A stretch of DNA of 64,000 nucleotides from Selaginella moellendorffii. Its lineage: Eukaryota > Plantae > Lycopodiophyta. Where the stretch lies: positions 163,620-227,619 of the forward strand of contig NW_003314306.1 in the NCBI RefSeq assembly GCF_000143415.4, read 5' to 3'. The position numbers and the translations under genes were made by a program. A model generated the notes under the pieces. It saw only the letters and a list, made by a program, of their open reading frames with translations, was not told the DNA's origin and ran no database searches. This document shows, piece after piece, positions 28,360 to 64,000 of this stretch; the stretch's first letter is position 1; every line of letters begins with the position of its first letter.

Positions 28360-30816
28360 TCACATAGCTAAGCTTGCATAGATATCACTCATGAGTATGT
28401 AATCAGCTGAGTCTTTGCCACCAGCAGCCACTAGTGCATCAAATGCAATCCTTGCAATTCTGAGGTTTCTCCATTTCTTGCAAGAACCCAGCAAAGTCCT
28501 CCAGATGACAGCATCAGCTCCAGTTCCTGGAATGCTCTGGACAAGAGCCAGTGCTTCCTCTAGCATGTTGGATCTGCCCAGCAAATCAACCATGCAATTG
28601 TAGTGACTCCCATCCAAGCTCTCAATCCCACACTCTTGGGCCATGAATTCAAAGTACAGCTTCCCTTCCCTCACCAGGCCCATATGACTACAAGCCATCA
28701 AAATGCAGGTGAGTGTGATGCCATTCATCTGAACACCACCATCTCTAATCTGCTCTGCAAGAGCAAACACCTGTGAGTAATTTCCATTTGAGCTGTACCC
28801 TGCTATCAAGGTGTTCCATGATATTATGTCTGGGGAGCTCATGCTGTTGAAGATCTCCTCAGCCCTTCTCGTGCTACCACATTTCATGTAGAAATCCACA
28901 AGTGCAGTTGCAACCACTTGATCTTGCTCTAATCCAGCTCTGCAAATTCTGATGTGGATTTGTTGCCCAGCTGATAGTGTGGCTAAGGATTCACAGGCCT
29001 TGAGTGCAGTAACATAGGTGAATGTGTCTGGTTCACAGTCCATTCTAGCAAATACTTCCAAAGCTAGCAAGCTTTCCCCATTCTCTGTGTAACCAAGTAT
29101 CAAGGAAGTCCATGTTACAACATCTGGATGGGGTATCTTATCAAATATTTCTCTGGCATTTGCCATGCACCCACATTTGCTATACATGTCTAGCAAGGTG
29201 GTGGAGATGGATTTATCAGATTCCAAACCACTTGCTTGGACTTTTTTGTGGATCAAAATACCCTTTTCAAGGCAAAACTGCTTCTGTGATTTGTTCTCAC
29301 TTGCCAGATTCCCGCATGCTTTGAGTGCACTGATATATGTCACAGAGCTTGGTTCACAACCAAGATCAAAGAAAAGCTCAATGGCTCTAGCGCTTTCAGC
29401 ATTCTCGGCATATCCCAGGATCAGAGAATTGCATGCAACCACGTCTCGATCGATAGTTCTATCAAAAACGTTTTTCGCGATTTCTAAGCTGCCACACTTG
29501 CAATACATGTCTATCAACATGTTTGCCACAATCACATTGGATTCTAAGCCCCGGGCTCTGATTGTTTTATGAATTGCAAGTCCCTTTTCAAGGTAAAACT
29601 TCTTTGATTTTGAATCTTTGGCCAAAAGCCCGCATGCCTTAAGCACAGCCACAAAGGTGACATAGCTGGGCTCACAATCCATGTAGTTAACGTATATATT
29701 TAATGCTACAAAACTCTCCCCATTCTCAACATATCCCCAGATGAGAGAGTTCCAAGTCACAACATTTCTATGCTTCATTGTATCAAAAACTTTCCTAGCA
29801 AGAAACATGGCTCCACACTTGCTATACATGTCTATCAAAGCGCTAGCCACAACTATATCACCCCCAAATCCAAGTTTGCTTGCTTGTTTGTGGATCAACA
29901 TCCCCCTCCCGAGACAAACTTCCTTTTGGTACTCACTCTCACAAGCCAAACTCTTGCATGCCGTGAGCGCTCCAACAAAGCTCACAGAGCTGGGATCACA
30001 GTCCATGCTCGCAAAGAGTTCCAAAGCACGCAAGCTTTGCCCGTTTGCGGCATATCCAAGAATGAGCGAGTTCCAGGAAATATGATCTCGTCGGCTAATC
30101 TTATCAAAAACATCTTGAGCAATTTTCATGTTTCCACACTTGCCATACATGTCCACCAAAGTATTTGCCACAACTACATTAGATTCCAGCCTTTTAGCTT
30201 TTACTTTCTTATGGATCTCGATTCCCCTCTCTAGGAAAAAGGTCTTGTCTTTGGATTCTTGAGCCAAGCAACCCAAGGCCTTGAGCACAGCCACGAAAGT
30301 GAAAGAATCTGGCTCGCAATCCATCTCATTGAAGAGATTCAAAGCTCTCGAGCTCTCTCCATTCTCGACGTATCCCAGGATGAGCGACGTCCATGCAACA
30401 ACATCCCGGTGGATCATCCCATCAAAAACTTCTTGCGCCAGGATCATACTCGAGAAAATGCCGTACATTTTGATGAGCGCCGCGGCTATGTACTTGTTGG
30501 TGTGAAATCCCGCAGCAAATGCCTCTTGGTGGAGAAACTTCCCATTTGCCAAGTCCCGGCATTTTCTGAGAGACACGACAATCTCCAAAGCAGTCTTTAG
30601 CTTGATGTGTGTTCTAGCTCGCTTTGGATTTGCAGCTTCCGAGTTTGTGGTACTCCGCGAAAATTCTGGATTTGCAACTTTTAAGTTTGTGATGCTCCGT
30701 GAAAATTTTGGATTTGCAACTTCCAAGTTAGTGATGCTCCTTGGAGTAGCCTAGAAAAATCACGTTAGAATATAATCTCTTCCTCCAAATTGTCTTACTC
30801 TAGATTCGAGGAGCAT
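28360..30816 (-). CDS. PLS-class PPR protein with E domain; short first exon MLLESR (intron 30751-30798)
   Basis: Many P-L-S motifs (LVDMYGKCG, WNSLILGYAENG); HYNCMVDLLGRS; WRTLLGSC; YILMSDIYA; a 48-nt GTAAG..TAG intron restores an ATG. Confidence 0.88.
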
Positions 30817-42937: not shown

Positions 42938-43037
42938 NNNNNNNNNNNNNNNNNNNNNNNNNNNNNNNNNNNNNNNNNNNNNNNNNNNNNNNNNNNNNNN
43001 NNNNNNNNNNNNNNNNNNNNNNNNNNNNNNNNNNNNN
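42938..43037. other. Assembly gap (100 N)
   Basis: N run. Confidence 1.
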
Positions 43038-44414
43038 ATGAGAGGGATGAATCTCATGAGCTCGGTCACAAACGAGAGAAAGCTTCATTCTAGCTTCTCT
43101 CATTCATGTCATTCAGGATCATCTAGTTTGTGCCTGGAAGAAAGGTGTGCAAGAGAGCCCTGGGCACTACCACAGAGTTATTGAAGGTAAGCTTTTCTTT
43201 CTCTTAAAGCTGCTTCATTTATGCAATGTTCAGGTTTCCTGTGTTGGAGACCATTTGGGCTGTGACTGTGTAGGAGTTGGGGCAAGCCATGCAGTAAGTT
43301 TTTGTGTCCATGTTCATGACAAGCTGGGATGGTAGAGTTTCATATTGATGGACAAGGAAGCCATCATCTGCTCTGGACATTAGTAGTGCAGCCTGCAATG
43401 GATGCTAGGAGCCAGATTTCACATTCCAATTCATCAGTCTTGCATTGACATCTTCTTGAGAGAGTGGTTTGCACTAATCTTATGACCATGAATAAACTTA
43501 TGTTTGAGCAGCCAGTGCAATAAAGAAGTAGTGTTCTGTTGGGGGATGGCACACGGCTTGGTATCCAGGGAGTCGGTAAATTCAAGCTCACTTTGGAAGA
43601 TGGCAATGAAATAAGCTTCACAAACATTGAGAAAGTTTTTGATCAAGCTCACATTCCATCACCAAATAGTCAGGATCAAGCTTTAGTTCAACCATTTGAC
43701 AACCAAGATCCAAATCAGATTCCATTAGTAAATAACAATGATTGAGTGGTTTATAGAATAAAGCAAAATTAACTTTTACAAATAAAAGGTGGTAATATAT
43801 ATATTTTACAACAATGACTGTTGGTAGTAGTTTCATTCCAGCTTGACGAGATTCTTGTGATGAAAAGTTGGAGGAACTCTTGTTGACAACACGTTATATA
43901 ACAATAGTATATTAATTCTTATTTTTTAGCTCTTTTATAGGTCTAATTTGTTTCCCACTGAGCACTATGGGTGTATTCATTGGCTTTTATAATAGATTGC
44001 TAACTTCTGTGTCAGGTTTAAATTTTCTTCCCAAGCTTCATCTCAACTATGGCCTTGTAGAGCTTGAAAGCTTCCACCACCTGTTATGTAGAAATAACAT
44101 GCATGATATCTAGGTAAAATCATTGATCAACATCATAATGTACCATGTGTTGAAATGACTAACCACTTCTATTGGTCAAAAAATATTTGAATGGGTGTTC
44201 AAGAGAATCCATGATGCAACCAACAAAACCACTCACTATAAAACTTGCCTCATCACTAAAGGTTTCACATAAGTTAAAGGGTGGATTATAGTAAAACTTT
44301 TTGCCAATGGTGAAGATGACTGGTGTCTACACTATCTTTGCAATAGCCAATGCTCAAGGATGGAAAGTCCACCAAATGTATGTTAAAATGACATTTTTTT
44401 CATGGAGTTTTTAA

Positions 44415-52798: not shown

Positions 52799-52935
52799 NN
52801 NNNNNNNNNNNNNNNNNNNNNNNNNNNNNNNNNNNNNNNNNNNNNNNNNNNNNNNNNNNNNNNNNNNNNNNNNNNNNNNNNNNNNNNNNNNNNNNNNNNN
52901 NNNNNNNNNNNNNNNNNNNNNNNNNNNNNNNNNNN
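52799..52935. other. Assembly gap
   Basis: N run. Confidence 1.
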
Positions 52936-53136
52936 AGTTGGAGTCCGAAGTGGAGTCCGAGATGGACCCGAGATGGAGTCCGAGATGGAGTCCGAAGTGG
53001 AGTCCGAGGTGGACCCGAGATGGACCCGAGTTGGAGTCCGAAGTGGAGTCCGAGATGGACCCGAGATGGAGTCCGAGATGGAGTCCGAGATGGAGTCTGA
53101 GATGGAGTCCGAAGTCGAGACCGAGACCGAGACTGG

Positions 53137-53174
<38 letters not shown>

Positions 53175-53283
53175 TCGGGACCGAGACCGAGACCGAGGCC
53201 GAGGCCGAGACCGAGCCCGAGCCCGAGTCCGAGTCCGAATCCGAGTCCGAGTCCGAGTCCGAGTCCAAGTCCGAGTCCGGAGC
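52936..53283. repeat. Compound 12-mer/6-mer tandem array (GATGGAGTCCGA)n, (GAGACC)n, (GAGTCC)n
   Basis: Direct reading. Confidence 0.9.
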
Positions 53284-55366
53284 CTGAGAGGGTGAAAGCC
53301 CAAAGCGTTCGTCTCCCAGACCCTGGGGGGTTTGGTGAGCTCCAAAAGTATAGTAGGGGGGAGGACTGCAGTGGAGCCAGTTTGGCCAGGAAAGGCTAGT
53401 TTGGCCCAGGAAGGCCGGACCCAGTGTTGGGTGATGAGCTGCCCACTGGGAAGTCCAAGACTAGAGTGAACACAGACCGACAAGCGGGGTAGCTTGGTGA
53501 AGTGTTCAAGAGCCGGCTCTAGTTCCCCTGGGAGATCGACTGGCCGATGCTCCCAGTCCAAGTGTGGGTGGCACTACCTACTTGGATACCTGGTGTGGCT
53601 CAACGGAACCCGCTCTAAGCCCATGGCTAGAGCACCCAAGGGCAGAAGGCGAGGAGAGTACCCAGGTGGCTCGCGTAAGGCCACGGTGTTCCGAAATGTT
53701 GTCCCAAAGGCCCAGACTGTGGAAAGGAGGAGGAGCAGTCCTCTGGGGTAGTGACCAAGGACACAGTCGTGTGGTGAGGAAGTCCCAGAGGACCGTGGGA
53801 CTTAGTGGTCGGGCCTGTGGGTCTCGATCCAGTGGCAGTGTTGGCAAACACGGCCAGGGGCAAAAAGGGACTTAGTGGGGATTGACAGAGGGATATTGGG
53901 GAAGGCTATTCCCCTTGTCGGTGGGCATCCTAAGGATGCTAAGGAGTGGATCTGAGATGACCACTCATGGATGGTTTGCCTAGTCTTGGAGAGCCAAGAC
54001 GGTGATGCAAGGGGTATTGGACTACCAGTGTGGCAAAGGTGATTGGACATGGCCTTAGCGTAACGGGCTGCTATGTCGGTGGTACCTTTGAGTGTCGGTC
54101 ATGGGATCGGACACGTGGAGCACTTGGACCAAGTGCAAATGTTGAGTGGCATGGACGCCATTCTCGGGGCTAGCAAGTCCCAAGTCCTGGATTGGACTTA
54201 TGGAGGTTGTGAATGAGACTCCTCCAAGTGGTCAGAGGTGTGGTTAAGTGACTAAAGTAGAATGGAAAATTTAGTCGCTTACAGGCAGGAGGTCGGTACT
54301 GCTAGTTCCCTTTATTGGCCCCTCTTGTTCAAGTGTTAGTAAACTGGACTTTGCATCTGTACTTGGCCGGATGAGCATAAGGATGGAATTCCTAAGTGTC
54401 TATTTTGCCAAGCATACTTGGCCCGGCTTTTTAGTTCTCTTTTGCTCTGTCTTGCACTGGCTTGGCAAGAACCCTCGCGTATTGAGACTAGTCCCTCAAT
54501 ATCGCTGGATGATAGCTTACCGTGTCTGCCAAACACCCTCGCTATCATGCCCTTTGTGTTAGTCTCATTTCGGTCCCAAATGCTATTTATGGAAAGTGTC
54601 CAGATTTGCTCATTTGGCATATCTACGGAATGTAGAGATCGTCCTGAACACAATGGTGTTCGTCCCATGCCCAAATTCGCAATCTAAAGACATTCCATAT
54701 TTAGTAAGTTTCGAGCTTGTCCCAGAGACTAACTCCTGATACTAAGGGAGGCTTGGGGTGAAAGCCCAAAGCGTGTGTTCATCAAGGGGGGGGGGGGGGC
54801 TGTGGGGGGTTCCAAATGTATAGTAGGGATAGTGGGTAGGTTGGGCATAGCCAACCAACCTGAGGCATAGTCTAGCTCCCGCTTGCGTGCCTGTCCTTGT
54901 TCTGCGTCCGGCTTGGGTCTAAGCCTAAGTTCCATTCCATGCTAGTTGGTGGAGTACCCATGTCCTCGCGTTAGGCCACCGGTATGCCGAAATAGCGCCA
55001 GACTCCGTTTGGCTCCGTTTTGCATGCTGGTCCTGGCATTGGGATGCTGGTTACTCTAGGACTGTTCCAAGTCGCTCCGGGCCCCTGTCCCTTCGCTCCT
55101 TGGGCTTTATGCTCGGGAGTTGCTCCGTGGTTCGGTTCCGTCACTCTTTGGCTCCATGCTTGGGAGTTTGGCACCGTTTCTTCGTTCAGTGGCCCAAGGC
55201 TCTGGACCTCGGGTTCCTATGGACACGTGGCATGGACACGTGGCATGTGACACGTGGCATCTGTCACGTGGCACAAAGAGGGTTTAGGTTCCGCTTCGTG
55301 GTGTTATCCTATGGTAAATCACCATAGGATAAAGGGTCAAAACCACGTGCGCTACAGTTTTGCTTG

Positions 55367-55614
55367 ATCCTTTATTAGTCTCCACCTAAGCTAGTTGAGA
55401 AACTAATCTTCACATGTGCACTTAACCAGATGACCATAAAGACGGAATTTCTAAGTGCTATTTGTCAAGCATACTTGATCTGGTTAAAGAAACAAAACTA
55501 GGTCAAGTATGCTTGACTAATAACACTTAGGAATTCCATCTTTATGCTCATCTGGTCAAGTGCACACATGAAGATTAGTTTCTCAACTAGCTTAGGTAGA
55601 GACTGATAAAGGAT
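55367..55614. repeat. Long inverted repeat (arms ~119 bp, 10-nt loop) derived from family-A LTR 5' ends
   Basis: 55367-55485 is the imperfect reverse complement of 55496-55614. Confidence 0.9.
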
Positions 55615-57364
55615 TCAACAATATCAGCCTTTTGTTATCGTGGTAGTAATAAAAGAATATCCGAAAGGACTAGCTGACAGATAGCTTTCAATACCCACAA
55701 TATTGGAGAATAGTGTTCCCCCATATCTTAAGGCATTCTAAGGATGCTAAGAAGTGGTCAAGACTGACTACTCATAAATAGATAGTCTAGTCTTGGAAAA
55801 TGGGAAATACAATAGTAAGAATGGATTGTGTGATATAGTCTAGTATAAATTTATAAGTAGCTTATTGAAACATAAAGACATCAATAAGCAATTGGTTTGA
55901 TAGTTTCTCCTCAATTAAATGGTCTATGAAGGAGTCTAGCAATATTATGAAGTTTGTCTTGTCAATTGTTAAAAAGGATTTTGCCTATACTGCTGCTTTA
56001 CTAGTAAGAGATTGGAGAAAGTCCCACTTCTTACAATCATTATCAAATATGGTATCGGAAGAGCAATAGTATTTAAACCGCTCAATATAGATGGAGGGGG
56101 AAATGTTACTAATGCCAAAAAATGTTGGTAGATTTCTCCCCTTTTGGACAATATGGACTTTAGATTGTTATGCCATATTATGTGAATCCCTCAAGTAGGA
56201 ATCCTTTGAGGATGTTAAATATTGATCATCCAAGTTTGATAAATAAACTCCCTCTAAAGTCATGAAAGTTTTTATATACCTTGCTTGATTGTGTCAAGTG
56301 CTGGAAATGCAAGAAGCCAAGGAGTTTAGCCAAAGTTACTGCTGATATAAATCAAATAGCAAGATCTCTTAAGTGTCAAAAACTCCACTCCAAGTTATGA
56401 GAAAAGCAAGAAAGATGCCTCCAATGAAGAAAAATAGCCTCTCTTGCAAGGAACTCTTGATGTGGCTGCTGGATCAAAAGATGGCCAAAAGGACCCCCTA
56501 GGAAGAAGCAAGAAAAAGACCCAAAGAAAGTGGAAGAAGACATATTTATGAAAGTAGCAAAAAGAAAATGACTAGAAATTATGAGATACTCAGCTTGCAC
56601 TCAAATGAAAGAGGAAGACAAAATTTTAAAACACAATGCAATAACTTTGATGAATGATGGATACTTTGGCCTAAAAAAACCCACACACTCAAAAGAGAAA
56701 AAATAATTTGCATGCAACTCCAAAGAACATGAAAATGGAAATGCATACATCAATGGAAAGAGTTTAAGCATATCTATATGATACACTAAAAGGAAATGCA
56801 AAAGAGTGGAATAATTGCAAGAACTAGACACTCAAATATGACCATGACTATAACCAAATGAGAAGATGAAGAGAAGGATTAGAATTCTACTAGACTTTGC
56901 ATGAATTTAGCTTCTAGAAAGCTCTATCACCATCCCAGACCTCTTTGGGAGAAAGATTTAGAATGAAAATGCAAATAAAAGTGCATACTTGAATCTAAAG
57001 CCTATATCCTTGAATTGCAAAAAAAGGCCATTCAAAAGAAGGCAAATAAGGGGATTACCCTAAACAAGTGTAGACCATTCTTAAGCTCACGAGTTGAAGG
57101 GTTAAGCTCTCAAGTTGAGCTTAATTTTTAATTATATTTTAATATAAATATTATAAACTTTAAAATATTAAGGTTATGGTAAACCTAATAGATTCACCAC
57201 TCTCTACACATTAAGATAAAAATATTCTAAAGGACACTTATTTTAACAATTTAAATATTTACTATATGCTATAATAGGGATGTTTGTTAGAACATAAAAT
57301 AAGATGTTTGCAGAAAAATTAATCTTGTTACTTCCTTAAATCTATACTCTATAAATCTGTACTT

Positions 57365-57860
57365 GAGCACATTTTTGGTCTGAGGGACTGAGGTATTTAA
57401 GTAACCTCGGCCCCTAGGCTATAGAAGTGCTCAAGGTTAAATTTGGGCCAACCACCTTAGACACATTTGCAGTTTGGGGGTTTAAGGTTGTTTGAATAAC
57501 CTCGACCCCCTGGGCTGTAGAAGTGTCCAAGGTTGAGCTCAAGCTGGTCATCTCGGCACATTTGTGGCCTAGGGGCTGAGGTTATGGCCACAAAAGTGCT
57601 TGAGGTCGAGCTTGTGCCAGCCACCTCAAGCACTTTTGGGGCCTGGGTGGCCAAGGTTAGGAAGTTGCAAAAGTGTCTAAGGTTGAGCTTGGGCCAGCCA
57701 CTTTAGGCACTTTTGTGGCCTATGGGGCCGAGATTATTTGAATAACCTTAGCCCTCAAGGAACACAATGTACCCAAGGTTGAGCTTAAGTTGGTCACCTC
57801 ATGCACTTTTTATGCTCATAAGGCTAAGGTTATTTGAATGACCTCAAAAACACAAAGTGG
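57365..57860. repeat. Degenerate ~85-bp tandem repeats with internal palindromes (transposon subterminal-like)
   Basis: Recurrent GAGGTTATTTGAATAACCTC-like and CCAAGGTTGAGCTT..CCACCT motifs. Confidence 0.7.
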
Positions 57861-57949
57861 TTAAGTTTTGGCTAGCTTAATGTTTTGTCTTTTTATCTTT
57901 AATTTATTATTAACTTTATTTAGTTTGACTAACAAAATTTCTTTTTTTG

Positions 57950-59000
57950 CAGAAAAGGAAAATAGTGCCATCTAAAAATGTTGTTAAAGCCATGAGAATA
58001 TAAGAAGGTGAATTTGACATTGATAAAGAAGAGTTGCAAATCTTCCTAACAACATGGTGGATAAGTGCTTCCATAAAACTATTATAGGGATAAAAGAAAA
58101 AACAATTTATCAAACACTTGTAGCACTCAAGTGGCTACACCCTAGTGATTTGATCAAGGAAATCCTTTTTTGCCATTTGCAGCAGACGAACTTTATGTGC
58201 ACAACATTAAAGTATGTTAACCCACATATATAACTTGTTTAAATAGAATGGTCTTGTGACGAATATTGGTATGTTTCTAATCTCTTTCTGCAAGTTAAGG
58301 ACAATAAATATTGTTACCATCACACATGAGATCGTGAACAACTGGAATCCTATTTGGAGGAGGAAGTCCCTTGAAATTGATAACATGCTTATCAAGCTTA
58401 CAGGGATAATATTCCAAATTATTAATGGTAACCATTAGTATAGGTTTGGATGAAGTGTATTGACAATTATTTTCATGATGATCCCATTTACCATATCAAG
58501 TTTCTAGTTGGCCATATCTACATGAGGGGGCCCTGAATGTCAACAAACTTTTCTTAACTTGCCAAAAGATCAATATGTAAGTTTTAAAATTTCACTTTTA
58601 ACTCCATTTTAACTTTTTTTGTCATGTTTAAATGCAAGGTTAAGCAATTTTCTGTCCAAAAGCAAAATATTATCTATAACATCAAGTAACTCTATTTTTT
58701 GACAAACTTGAGTGAGGATGACATTCGACAATATTATGGTGATGATCTTGCAACATTTGTTTGGCACTTATGCATTCAAAATGATGGTACAACATGGTTT
58801 AATAATCTAATCAATTTTATACTCATAATGTATTGCAAGGTATGTCTTTCCCTTTCACTTTATAAAAACCTCTTTATATTGTTTTGGTTTCTAGCCTTTG
58901 GTGAAGGTTAAGCAAGATGTTTATAAACTTGCACATCTAAAGAAGAGTTAGGAAGAGCTATTGGCTAAGCTCGTACAAATTGAGCATAAAATTTAGCATA
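57950..59000 (+). pseudogene. Degenerate Ulp1/C48-protease-like sequence (transposon-borne type)
   Basis: IIFQIINGNH-stop (cf. IPINxxxHW) and IQNDGTT (cf. QxNxxDCG); many stops. Confidence 0.4.
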
Positions 59001-59699
59001 CAAAGTCTTCAAAGTTGAAGAAACTAATATGTATTGCAAAACATCATAGGCCAAAGGAGTGGCTAAAGATTATATTTGAAATTTTTACTCACAAATGTAA
59101 ATTTTTTATCACATGCTTCATTTTTCTCAATTACATATATGCTATACTTTTGCAATGAATAAACTCCAGATGACATGATTTACAATATCACAAAATCAAA
59201 ACTCCCATACAAGCAATAGATCAAGACTCTAGAGTTCCTCAATATTTATTTGATGAATAAAGAAAAAAGATTGCCAGAAGTATTTGAAAACATGATGAGA
59301 AAGGCTGTCTACATCACACAAATTATATCTAAAGATAAGAAGTTCTTAGTACTGCATATTGGTGATGATTTAGATGGCACATTCATATCTTTTAATACTT
59401 ATGTTAACACATCATTGAAAGGGATCAAAGAAGAGTGGCTGCCAAAGAAGTTTATAAGCAAGACAACTTATGATTGCCAATATAGTTAGCTTTATTTCAT
59501 GCAATATGCACTTTATAGGTATAACATGATTTCTAAGATCTTTCCTAATTATATATGGAATGCGAGCTTGATTAGAAGCTTCTTCATCCTTCTCTCCATC
59601 ATCACCAACATTGCCATCATTACTAGCAGTGATAACTTCCTCCTGATCTAATGTAAGGGTCTCCTTCTCTAGGAGCTCCAACTCCCAAGAGAATTCTAC

Positions 59700-60950
59700 T
59701 TTCTATGCCTTTGGCACTCTCATAAACATTATTGAGTATATTCTTTCATCCCTTACACCCTTTGCAACTAATCAAGTGCAAACTGGTGCCTCAAATAACA
59801 TGCCTCTATATCGAAAATATCTATTGACTCACCAAATAGCTAGGATCAAGCTTTAGTTCAACCATTTGACAGCCAAGATCCGAATTAGGTTCCATTAGCA
59901 AATAATGATGATCAAGTGGTTCATAGAATATCACATTGACCTTGAGATAAGCAAAATTGACTTTTACAAATAAAAGGTGGTAACATATATTTTTTACAGC
60001 AATGACTGTTGACAATAGTTTCATTTTAGCTTGACAAGATTTTTGTGATGAGGAGTTGAAGGAACTCTTATCAACAACATGCCATATGACAGTGGTATAT
60101 TAATCCTTATTTTTTATATTCACTTAGCTCTTCTGTAAGTCTGACTTGTTTCCCCAATAACGCACCGAGGCATTATGGGTGTCTTCATTCTCTTCTATAG
60201 TAGATTGCTAGCATCTTTCACAGAAGATGATATAAACATGGACATACAACATTAGTTCAACTATTAGTGTTGAAAGATACAAAAGCCTTTACTTTCAATT
60301 GTGGACTTCATTCTCTTTGACTTTTTAGATGGTCTTTCAGATATTGATGCGAAAGTCAAGGACTAAAACTTTTTCACACTTAATCACATATGTGATGCAT
60401 TCTTTTTGTTGGAAGCACTTATGCTCAAAGTTGGCAATGTCATCTTCATCCCACCAAACAACCCCAACTAGATGTATAAACTTATAATGTATGTAGTTCA
60501 TTTCAAGTTGCTCTCTTCCTGATGCATTATGGATCCTATTATCATCAATAAAGCAAGATTGAAAAAGTGAGTATATATTTCATATCTTTATCTAATTTCT
60601 AAACTTTCTTATTTTTCAAGTTATAATGTAAAAATATCATACCTTCTGTAGAAACATGCATAATGAATTTTATGATAGCAACTGTGCAGCCTATATTTTG
60701 CCTAGGTACAACAGTTCTATTAACATTATACCCAAACTTATGGATGAGTAAATCTATAACACATTTCCTAGGTATTGATTTCAAACTCTATTAGCAATGC
60801 AAGTCTTACTTGACCTCTATTGCCCACCAAATGGTGTTGTGATTGATTGCATAGCAAGTAGTGGTTTTATAGTAAAAGTAGTATATGACTTTGGTAGGCT
60901 AGTATTTACTATTAAAGAACATTATTTTTTCAAACGCTAACTCAAAGGAT
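59700..60950 (+). mobile_element. Ty1/copia remnant related to the 43-47 kb element
   Basis: TGASNNM protease-like motif, HFLGIDF; 59828-60210 aligns with 43658-44005. Confidence 0.65.
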
Positions 60951-62182
60951 TTTGTAACCTACCTCTAACCTCAAGGAGGTAAATTATATTTATTAAGATT
61001 TCAATACATATTTAGATCTATTTTATAAATCACGGTCATCTGGAGTTTTTAAAATTAAAGGCTTTGGAAGTTTTCCCAACTATGTAGAAGCCATGGCTCA
61101 ACAAACGCAAGGTGGATCTTCCCTACAATACCAATATAGAAAAAGGTATAGAAGAAATCAATATACTAATGATGAGGTAGAAGAAAGTTACATACATCCT
61201 TATATGAAATAAAAAACCTATCATATATTAAATGTCAATGACAATGTCAGATGTTAGTAATAGTGTCAATGTTAGATATCATAATTGTAGATTGTCATTC
61301 TCACATGTTATTATCACTTTACAATGTTTATGTATTGCCATATCCTCCTTCAACATCTTCTAAACAATTGTATATGATATGATAGCACCATCTAGAACAA
61401 AGTATGTTATTTACAACTAATATCTATATATTTTCTTTTAATAGACAATTTTATAATATAATAAAGTAATTCTAGATCTTACATTCCATTGTAAAATGGC
61501 CTAAAACCCCTATATTATGCACTAGCCAATGTAGTGTTTCCTAAGAGGATATTATTCCTCACTATGAAGTGATAATGGGTATGTGTCTATAACTCGTTTT
61601 AAATCTATTATACATCCACACATAAGAAAAAATAGCATATTAAATACCGAATATAATAACATTTTGTATTTTCAAGTAATCCTACCATATCAAGAGCAAG
61701 ATCTTGTAGAAACATATGGCACTACTCTTAAAGCACTACAGGCAATCCCTCTCTAGTAGCATGATCCAAAATTTCATATATAAGGAGCTCTAGTTCAACT
61801 TCACTAGAGCCCCCAATAGAAAAAGGATTATTATGTGAAGGTGAAGGTGGAATGTTAGTAAAATTTGGGGATGGAAGTGGAGATTGATATGAAATGCTAG
61901 GGGGCTAAGTATGAATAACAGTAACTTTCTTTCAAACCATTTCTATAAAAACTTTGAAAGAGGTTAAGGCGAATAAGAAACTATGATAACTATAAATTTT
62001 CTTTACTAGTTTATATACTAAGTTTTAGTCTTGGGAAGGAGGTTTATTTATTATAATATTGATAATACTCAAATTCATGAAATGTTCATTCTAATGAAAT
62101 CTTACTTCACTACACATACTACATTTATACCAATTTTCTAAAGTGGATACACCACCTCTAGTAGCATGAGGACCCATCTAGT

Positions 62183-62626
62183 CCTCATGGTAGAGTAGCA
62201 TCCCGAGCTCTATGACCACTTCATGGAAGCTATAAACCACTCCCAAAGGTTGATGGGCAAATTCATATTTACCACATCAATACCTTTTTAAAAATTTGAT
62301 AGGGATGTAATTGTTTCTATTAAGAAGTTTGGGCTGGCTAAGCTTTTCTTTCTCCTTTGTCAACTTGAGAAAGAGAGGGACCTCAAGGCATTCACAATCA
62401 CCTTTCTTCCATTCTTCGTTTGTCTATTATATTTGTTTTTCCTCATGTGCATGGCAGGCAAGCTCTAGATGCAATTGGAAGTTCAAAAGCAATTGCATAA
62501 ACAGCTTGCAAAATTTCTCTAAAAATATATCTCTTAAATAGGAGCAAAGATACTCCAAACATAAGGTGTAGGAGAAATACTTGTAAAGTATACTCAAGAA
62601 GTAACAAATGATGACCTCTCTAGCCA
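62183..62626 (+). pseudogene. Decayed MYB-CC (PHR1/PHL-type GARP) transcription factor fragment; left arm of an inverted repeat
   Basis: PELYDHFMEAINH, TPKG, KFGLAK, MQLEVQKQLHKQL, KYL*SILKK. Confidence 0.8.
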
Positions 62627-62835
62627 ATCAAACTAGATATAGATCCAAACCCCATAATGTGAGGAGCATAAGCCAACAGGATGTAATTCTCCCTAGCTCA
62701 CATATATGCTCACTACCCCAAGCAGCAGCCTTTCAGTTCAAACTGAAAAAGTGCTCAATTAATGTTTTGCTTTCACCTTTGCCCTTAAAATGGATTTGAC
62801 ATTATTTTATTTTTTAGTTTAAATGAGAGTTTAAA

Positions 62836-63277
62836 TGGCTAGAGAGGTCATCATTTGCTGCTTTTTGAGTATATTTTACAGGTATTTCTTGTACACCTTA
62901 TGTCTGGAGTATTTTTGCTCCTATTTAAAAGACATGTTTTTAGAGAAATTTTGCAAGCTGTTCATGCAATCGCTTCTGAACTTCCCCTTAAATCTAGTGC
63001 TTACCTGCCACGTACATGAGGAAAAACAAATATAATAGACAAACAAAGAATGGAAGAGAGGTGGTTATAAATGCCTTGAGGTCCCTCCCTTTCTCAAGTT
63101 GACAAAGGAGAAAGAAAAGCTTAGCCAACCCAAACTTCTTAATAGAAACAATTACACCCCTATCAAATTTTTAAAAAGATACTAATGTGGTAAATATAAG
63201 TCTGCCTGACCTTTGGGAGTGGTTCATGGCTTCCATGAAGTGGTCATGGAGCTCAGGATGCTACTCTACCATGGGGG
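62836..63277 (-). pseudogene. Decayed MYB-CC fragment; right arm of the inverted repeat
   Basis: Minus strand PELHDHFMEAMNH, EVQKRLHEQL (exact LHEQL motif), KYL*NILKKQQ. Confidence 0.82.
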
Positions 63278-64000
63278 CATCCTTCAAGTTCATTCACATT
63301 CTTTCCTCCATAATCATGAATCAATGGATATGGGTTCCAATGGGACTTTGTGCTTAAATCTGGTCCTTTTCTGCCTGATTTCTTTACATGCCATTTTTAC
63401 TATAACATTCTACTATCTTAACATTTTTGAACAATGAATTTTGAAACAAGTTTGAATATCAAAATCATATAAAATGACAGTCTTGTAGCAAATTTAATTG
63501 TGAAAGTTCAGTACATCTTATTTCTACTGATAAAAATAAAGATCGATCTACTAGTGTAACAAAACCCCCACCACGACGTGTAATACAATGTTCTTTTATA
63601 AATTTTATAGCTTCTAAAATATCATTTCTAGTTTCTATAACATTGCGAGTTCTTCTTCTTGTTACTAATAAAGCAAATTTAAGATTTATAGAGCTTTCTC
63701 TATACCTCATTTGAAATGGATTTCATTGATTTAATATATTTGTTGAAGCTTGACAATATTCATTATCACTAATTCTTAAATGTCTTCCTCTCATATAACA
63801 AGATTCAATTGCAGGGCTTGAATAACAATGAGATTTTATTAAAATATTTACTAGAAATAGTATAATATATTAAAATACATATTTATATATTATGAAAATA
63901 TTTAATAAAAGTAATAAACTATTTTTAAGAGAAGTCTGAGAGCTCACAATACCAAAATGTGCATATGTGTATTAGCCTGAAACACTAACTTATATATAAG

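Follow-up and report, generated by a model that had tools for sequence, protein, structure and literature searches.

Positions 62183-63277 of the window (i.e., the whole 64-kb stretch of Selaginella moellendorffii DNA that was analyzed) form a long inverted repeat, both arms of which appear to descend from a gene of the MYB-CC (PHR1/PHL-type) family. The arms carry stop codons and deletions in common, differ from one another mainly by transitions, and show no bias toward changes that would keep them paired. The explanation that we consider likely is that a dead MYB-CC pseudogene fragment gave rise to a long inverted repeat that is inert and decaying neutrally. The structure is real and ordinary, and a regulatory role for it is unlikely as well as unproven.

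Geometry of the inverted repeat and family assignment of its arms

A repeat search of the window returned two collinear inverted pairs, 62256-62634/62828-63206 (379 nt, 90%) and 62183-62250/63209-63276 (68 nt, 93%), the sole break between them being a 3-nt indel at 62251-62253. By blastn, arm 1 aligned to arm 2 over a single stretch of 452 columns (89.2% identity with gaps counted, E 2.9e-171), and global alignment gave 46 mismatches over 449 aligned nt (89.8% identity) with one indel of 3 nt. These results bear out the ~440-bp inverted arms described in the initial annotation. The spacer described there also exists but is 193 nt rather than ~210 bp in length, because each arm reaches 8 nt further inward than first stated. 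The two copies lie tail-to-tail, with their 3' ends pointing at each other. No further copy of the arm sequence was detected in the 64-kb window by either blastn or the repeat search, and blastn found no similarity between the flanks outside the arms.

Given that the right border of the repeat lies 723 nt before the end of the window, and that the assembly contains N gaps elsewhere (in the window at 42938-43037 and 52799-52935, both far from the repeat), the structure might be suspected of being a palindromic chimera generated during assembly. Artefactual palindromes, however, have essentially identical arms, whereas here 46 of 449 sites differ, a 3-nt indel separates the arms, and the 193-nt spacer is unique. 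At 10% divergence, the arms cannot come from a palindromic assembly chimera, and we attach next to no probability to an artefact.

When translated, both arms displayed the same order of motifs in shifting frames, i.e., VE*HPEL(Y/H)DHFMEA..NH, TPKG, IYHI..FLK and KKFGLAK, followed by a linker and then by (L/I)..EVQK(Q/R)LH(K/E)QL and EQ.YS.HKV..KYL*.ILKK.QMMTSLA (Table 1). All of the decayed GARP-MYB and coiled-coil peptides quoted in the initial annotation were found, at verified coordinates. The arms carry different variants of two of these motifs, with EVQKQLHKQL and KYL*SILKK in arm 1 versus EVQKRLHEQL and KYL*NILKK in arm 2. In a six-frame translation of the window, the exact 10-mer EVQKRLHEQL of arm 2 has 1.5e-8 chance occurrences expected, and the pattern EVQ[KR].LH is confined within the window to the two arms.

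The MYB-CC family, which includes PHR1, is defined by a MYB domain together with an LHEQLE coiled coil (Pfam PF14379, Myb_CC_LHEQLE; PMC11225713). In both arms, a MYB signature (SHLQKYR-type) and an LHEQLE coiled-coil signature occur collinearly. As in MYB-CC (PHR1/PHL) genes, PELH..F.EA, TPKG, IYH, K-x-x-LAK, EVQKRLHEQL and KYL..IL.K occur in matching order, and intron-like interruptions are kept between the exon-like blocks. The residue-by-residue match of the remnants (W-x-PELH ... SHLQKYR-type, LHEQLE) was judged against what we take to be the family consensus. Judged in this way, both arms appear to descend from a MYB-CC (PHR1/PHL-type) gene, which is a statement of descent and not of function. 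The retention of intron remnants indicates that the source was a genomic DNA copy and not a retrocopy.

The surviving pieces are short. The stop-free MYB piece of 30 aa matched no Pfam family, including the profiles PF00249 and PF14379 of MYB-CC proteins, and a PDB search gave only a spurious summed match to designed 'Bagel' repeat proteins; the coiled-coil pieces without stops are 15-17 aa long. Exact-sequence look-ups gave no match for eight ORFs that lie within or next to the repeat, or for nine candidate gene products from other parts of the window. No other MYB-CC sequence was found within the window outside the arms. Inside the coiled-coil remnant of arm 1, positions 62458-62509 form a local palindrome (20-nt arms, 85% complementary, 12-nt loop), which is below plant pre-miRNA size and is probably a product of chance.

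Table 1. Features of the inverted repeat at 62183-63277. Positions are those of the window; asterisks within peptides denote stop codons.
Feature	Position	Strand	Length or description	Basis
Arm 1, sense copy of the putative MYB-CC pseudogene fragment, from MYB-domain start to coiled-coil end	62183..62634	+	452 nt	Alignments, translation
Arm 1 MYB/GARP remnant	62196..62342	+	Holds the next six rows	Translation
TAG	62196-62198	+	In W-codon position of MYB domain	Translation
HPELYDHFMEAINH	62199-62240	+	Read VE*HPELYDHFMEAINH with preceding stop	Translation
TPKG	62239-62250	+	Frame shifted	Translation
IYHINTFLK	62267-62293	+	Frame shifted	Translation
Intron remnant		+	28-31 nt, between IYHINTFLK and KKFGLAK	Translation
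KKFGLAK	62322-62342	+		Translation
Arm 1 coiled-coil remnant	62418..62631	+	Holds the next four rows	Translation
Intron remnant	62418-62457	+	40 nt, GT..AG still present	Translation
KL*MQLEVQKQLHKQL	62460-62507	+	TAG at 62466-62468	Translation
Intron remnant	62508-62541	+	34 nt	Translation
EQRYSKHKV*EKYL*SILKK*QMMTSLANQ	62542-62631	+	TAA at 62584-62586 common to arm 2	Translation
Spacer, potential hairpin loop	62635..62827	.	193 nt; GC 0.36, 0 CpG, without recognizable homology	
Arm 2, reverse-oriented version of the arm 1 fragment	62828..63277	-	450 nt	Alignments, translation
Arm 2 MYB/GARP remnant	63120..63269	-	Stop, frameshifts and deletions as in arm 1	Translation
VE*HPELHDHFMEAMNH	63269-63219	-		Translation
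TPKG	63220-63209	-		Translation
IYHISIFLK	63195-63169	-		Translation
KKFGLAK	63140-63120	-		Translation
Arm 2 coiled-coil remnant	62831..63002	-		Translation
KH*I*GEVQKRLHEQL	63002-62955	-	LHEQL signature intact	Translation
EQKYSRHKVYKKYL*NILKKQQMMTSLAI*	62920-62831	-		Translation

Lesions common to both arms and divergence between them

Neither arm contains an intact open reading frame. In both, TAG occupies the tryptophan codon of the MYB domain (62196-62198 / 63263-63261), a further TAG lies shortly upstream of the EVQK motif (62466-62468 / 62996-62994), and TAA falls within KYL(Q) (62584-62586 / 62878-62876). The DNA-binding domain of each arm also has two frameshifting gaps, one of ~23 nt from FMEA..N to TPKG and one of ~17-20 nt from TPKG to IYH, the missing lengths being gauged against the literature consensus of the family. 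With at least three in-frame stops and two frameshifting deletions in common, neither N- nor C-terminal parts, and a decayed AT-rich composition, the arms, unlike MYB-CC genes, do not constitute a gene.

Because the arms differ by just one 3-nt indel, the common lesions predate the inverted duplication. The duplicated unit was an old pseudogene fragment rather than a live target gene, and the sequence indicates that it was already dead when copied. Judged on the family consensus, roughly 40% of the nearly invariant positions appear to have been replaced before duplication. From this proportion we infer that the nucleotide identity of the arms to any living paralogue is probably ~75%, a figure that is estimated rather than measured.

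The 46 differences between the arms comprise 40 transitions and six transversions (K2P 0.113). Each arm has two CpGs, none of which is common to both, and each surviving CpG is TpG or CpA in the opposite arm. The ratio of observed to expected CpG was 0.12-0.13 in the arms, 0 in the spacer and 0.15 in 56000-62182, versus 0.94 in the genic 1-14 kb, and GC content was ~0.33 in the 56-64 kb stretch versus 0.51 in the same genic region. We read this combination of substitutions and CpG loss as the mark of cytosines that were methylated, and deaminated, over a long period. Since CpG depletion spans the whole 8-kb neighborhood, any such silencing would not be specific to the repeat.

Under selection on a hairpin RNA, transitions leaving a G:U pair in the transcript should be overrepresented. 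Among the 40 informative sites, a number that confers low to modest power, 16 were G:U-compatible for a plus-strand transcript and 24 for a minus-strand transcript (binomial p=0.27), with no enrichment on either strand. The pair-preserving (compensatory) substitutions that the initial annotation had proposed looking for were thus not favored. The longest perfect run between the arms is 39 nt, as against 38 nt expected with randomly placed mismatches, and the mismatches are evenly spread (4, 8, 2, 2, 5, 8, 5, 6 and 6 per 50 nt along the arms), this distribution revealing no conserved duplex island within them. Nothing suggests that pairing has been under constraint since the duplication, and the divergence between the arms probably reflects some millions of years.

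In the scenario that we favor, a ~450-bp genomic piece of a MYB-CC (PHR1/PHL-type) pseudogene, with exons and shrunken introns, would have been copied locally and inverted, tail-to-tail, through a template switch during repair or replication in methylated, gene-poor DNA. Both arms would then have decayed neutrally (K2P 0.11), chiefly by transitions of the C-to-T type, as occurs in methylated repeat DNA.

Hairpin RNA and MIRNA readings of the repeat

As RNA, positions 62183-63277 are predicted to form one long hairpin with an MFE of -697.7 kcal/mol, a result that is trivial given the repeat. Pairing within the stem amounts to 90%, or to 93-95% with G:U counted. The long dsRNA that a read-through transcript had been proposed to form is thus predicted by the fold as a duplex of ~450 bp, whichever strand is transcribed. 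Orthologues of DCL1, DCL3 and DCL4 occur in S. moellendorffii, alongside a clear class of 21-nt small RNAs (PMC5569507), so a read-through transcript could be diced.

The repeat might, on these grounds, be an expressed hairpin RNA (hpRNA) locus at an early stage toward a MIRNA. A Pol II read-through transcript would fold and be diced by DCL4, DCL3 or DCL1, with the resulting siRNAs either directing methylation in cis, at the locus itself, or targeting live MYB-CC (PHR/PHL) mRNAs in trans. We regard this as unlikely. The structure agrees with the LIRBase definition of a long inverted repeat (LIR), i.e., arms >400 nt with >=80% matches and <=10% indels (PMC8728187), having arms of 452 and 450 nt that are 89.8% identical with three gap columns. 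siRNA production is, however, infrequent among LIRs: LIRBase lists 6,619,473 LIRs from 424 genomes, a mean of ~15,600 per genome, and in rice the libraries analyzed gave support for siRNA production from only 129-280 (PMC8728187). The predicted hairpin is highly stable, and its ~450-bp, 90%-paired stem would make a good Dicer substrate if transcribed. The whole 8-kb neighborhood is CpG-depleted and without a recognizable gene, so that silencing would not single out the repeat. Similarly, the DCL complement and 21-nt class noted above have to be set against the lack, in the same species, of DCL2, a 24-nt peak and PHAS/TAS loci (PMC5569507). Although MIRNAs that overlap two adjacent inverted pseudogenes, and whose target is the parent gene, are on record in Arabidopsis (PMC3237417), pair-preserving changes are not in excess here, the arms contain no island of conservation, and the repeat has no Rfam match. 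Finally, the EVQKRLHEQL stretch of arm 2 (30 nt) is intact and might match live MYB-CC mRNAs, yet the source, already a pseudogene, had lost ~40 nt of its MYB domain together with its matches at so many normally invariant residues. That siRNAs of a candidate diced hairpin, especially those from the LHEQL-coding stretch, trim PHR/PHL-type MYB-CC mRNAs in trans strikes us as very improbable.

If the repeat is instead inert and decaying, as we favor, a chance read-through transcript would still yield ~450-bp dsRNA, which could be diced to siRNAs. These would be a by-product that at most reinforces local silencing, and not a selected regulator of the phosphate-starvation MYB-CC factors.

Plant MIRNA annotation calls for a foldback no longer than ~300 nt that gives one miRNA/miRNA* duplex. 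Young MIRNAs display extended similarity to a live target, with foldbacks typically of 300 nt or less and one dominant duplex. In contrast, the foldback described here measures 1,095 nt (1.1 kb) with a stem of 452 bp, and its pairing shows no sign of having been selected. An Rfam 15 scan over 55000-64000 (E<=1) placed no RNA family, and hence no catalogued miRNA family, inside 62183-63277. The locus is therefore of the long-hairpin (hpRNA/LIR) type, and the label of proto-MIRNA, which had been suggested for it, does not fit.

The inverted-duplication model for the origin of plant MIRNAs, reportedly due to Allen et al. in 2004, likewise starts from adjacent copies of a protein-coding segment, one sense and one antisense. 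With regard to the suggestion that the locus had taken this route, the inverted, tail-to-tail copy of a MYB-CC fragment stands; the common stops and deletions indicate, however, that it was not a fresh copy of a live target gene. Inverted pairs derived from pseudogenes are among the starting points described for this route (PMC3237417, Figure 3C). The repeat also resembles LIRs that make long hairpin RNAs, such as the soybean CHS1/CHS3 and rice germin-like gene-pair loci (LIRBase, PMC8728187), in its gene-derived arms of >400 nt that are >80% matched, its short loop and its capacity for long dsRNA. The functional LIRs, however, consist of intact or near-intact paralogues with documented siRNAs, whereas the present arms are long-dead pseudogene fragments.

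Were the locus active, it would offer a dated snapshot, from an early-diverging vascular plant, of a pseudogene-born hairpin-RNA regulator that targets the central phosphate-starvation transcription factors. Action in trans would give a lineage without DCL2 and the tasiRNA pathway a small-RNA layer on phosphate-starvation signaling, one that originated in a dead paralogue. On present evidence, it is one more LIR made from a gene fragment. Its main use is as a negative control for candidate proto-MIRNAs, i.e., an old inverted gene-fragment duplication (~0.11 substitutions per site) with a neutral signature that is dominated by transitions, shows no G:U bias and includes common lesions older than the duplication.

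Sequence neighborhood of the repeat

Up to ~41 kb, the window contains NB-ARC-LRR, PPR, LRR-kinase and M48 peptidase genes, which are followed by LTR/TRIM-like repeats and then by AT-rich sequence from 56 to 64 kb. A Pfam search of 73 stop-free pieces from 55.7-64 kb found no credible protein domain, the best matches being SAPS (E 0.0018) and Pcf11_C (E 0.016). The AT-rich, CpG-depleted composition of 56000-64000 suggests old, methylated, gene-poor DNA. The weak match to SAPS (SIT4 phosphatase-associated protein) is at 57919-58134 on the minus strand. It falls below the cutoff, ~0.13 such matches being expected by chance over the 73 pieces, and neither the adjoining pieces nor a PDB search lent it support; the stretch could be a decayed gene fragment or noise.

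The abundance of LTR/TRIM-like repeats between 42 and 56 kb makes it conceivable that a transposon captured the gene fragments and carried them here (Pack-MULE, CACTA or Helitron type), or that such an element inserted at two nearby sites in opposite orientation. When the sequence was read, however, the borders of the arms and of the structure as a whole lacked terminal inverted repeats and target-site duplications, and none resembled the end of a Helitron; the 64-kb window held no extra copy, and the flanks were dissimilar. The marginal SAPS-like fragment 4 kb away might hint at a mosaic of captured genes, but that match is at chance level after multiple testing and its neighboring pieces add nothing. 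We thus consider transposon capture or paired insertion improbable.

A direct repeat at 43659-44008 and 59829-60216 (~350-390 nt, 77-88% identical, 16.2 kb apart) brackets nested LTR-like repeats. Its copies may be LTRs belonging to a very old element, or else AT-rich sequence that insertions have split apart. The MYB-CC inverted repeat sits outside this pair. A shorter foldback at 55360-55621, with 126-nt arms that are 88% complementary and a 10-nt loop, gave sub-threshold Rfam matches only (MIR400, 36 bits versus a gathering score of 83; mir-BART19). Because its arms resemble the LTR/TRIM-like repeats at ~44.5-45.0, 51.7 and 54.3 kb, it is probably a transposon-derived hairpin.

Elsewhere in the window, a PPR gene of the E-motif type occupies 28363-30468 on the minus strand, and its best match among S. 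moellendorffii proteins at NCBI (P0001, 802 aa, 1.84-Mb contig) reached 97% identity rather than 100%. That match is probably the other haplotype, which fits a two-haplotype assembly. A GAG/CCG-rich tandem array of at least 15 units of 12 nt occupies 52924-53288, where it abuts the run of Ns at 52799-52935.
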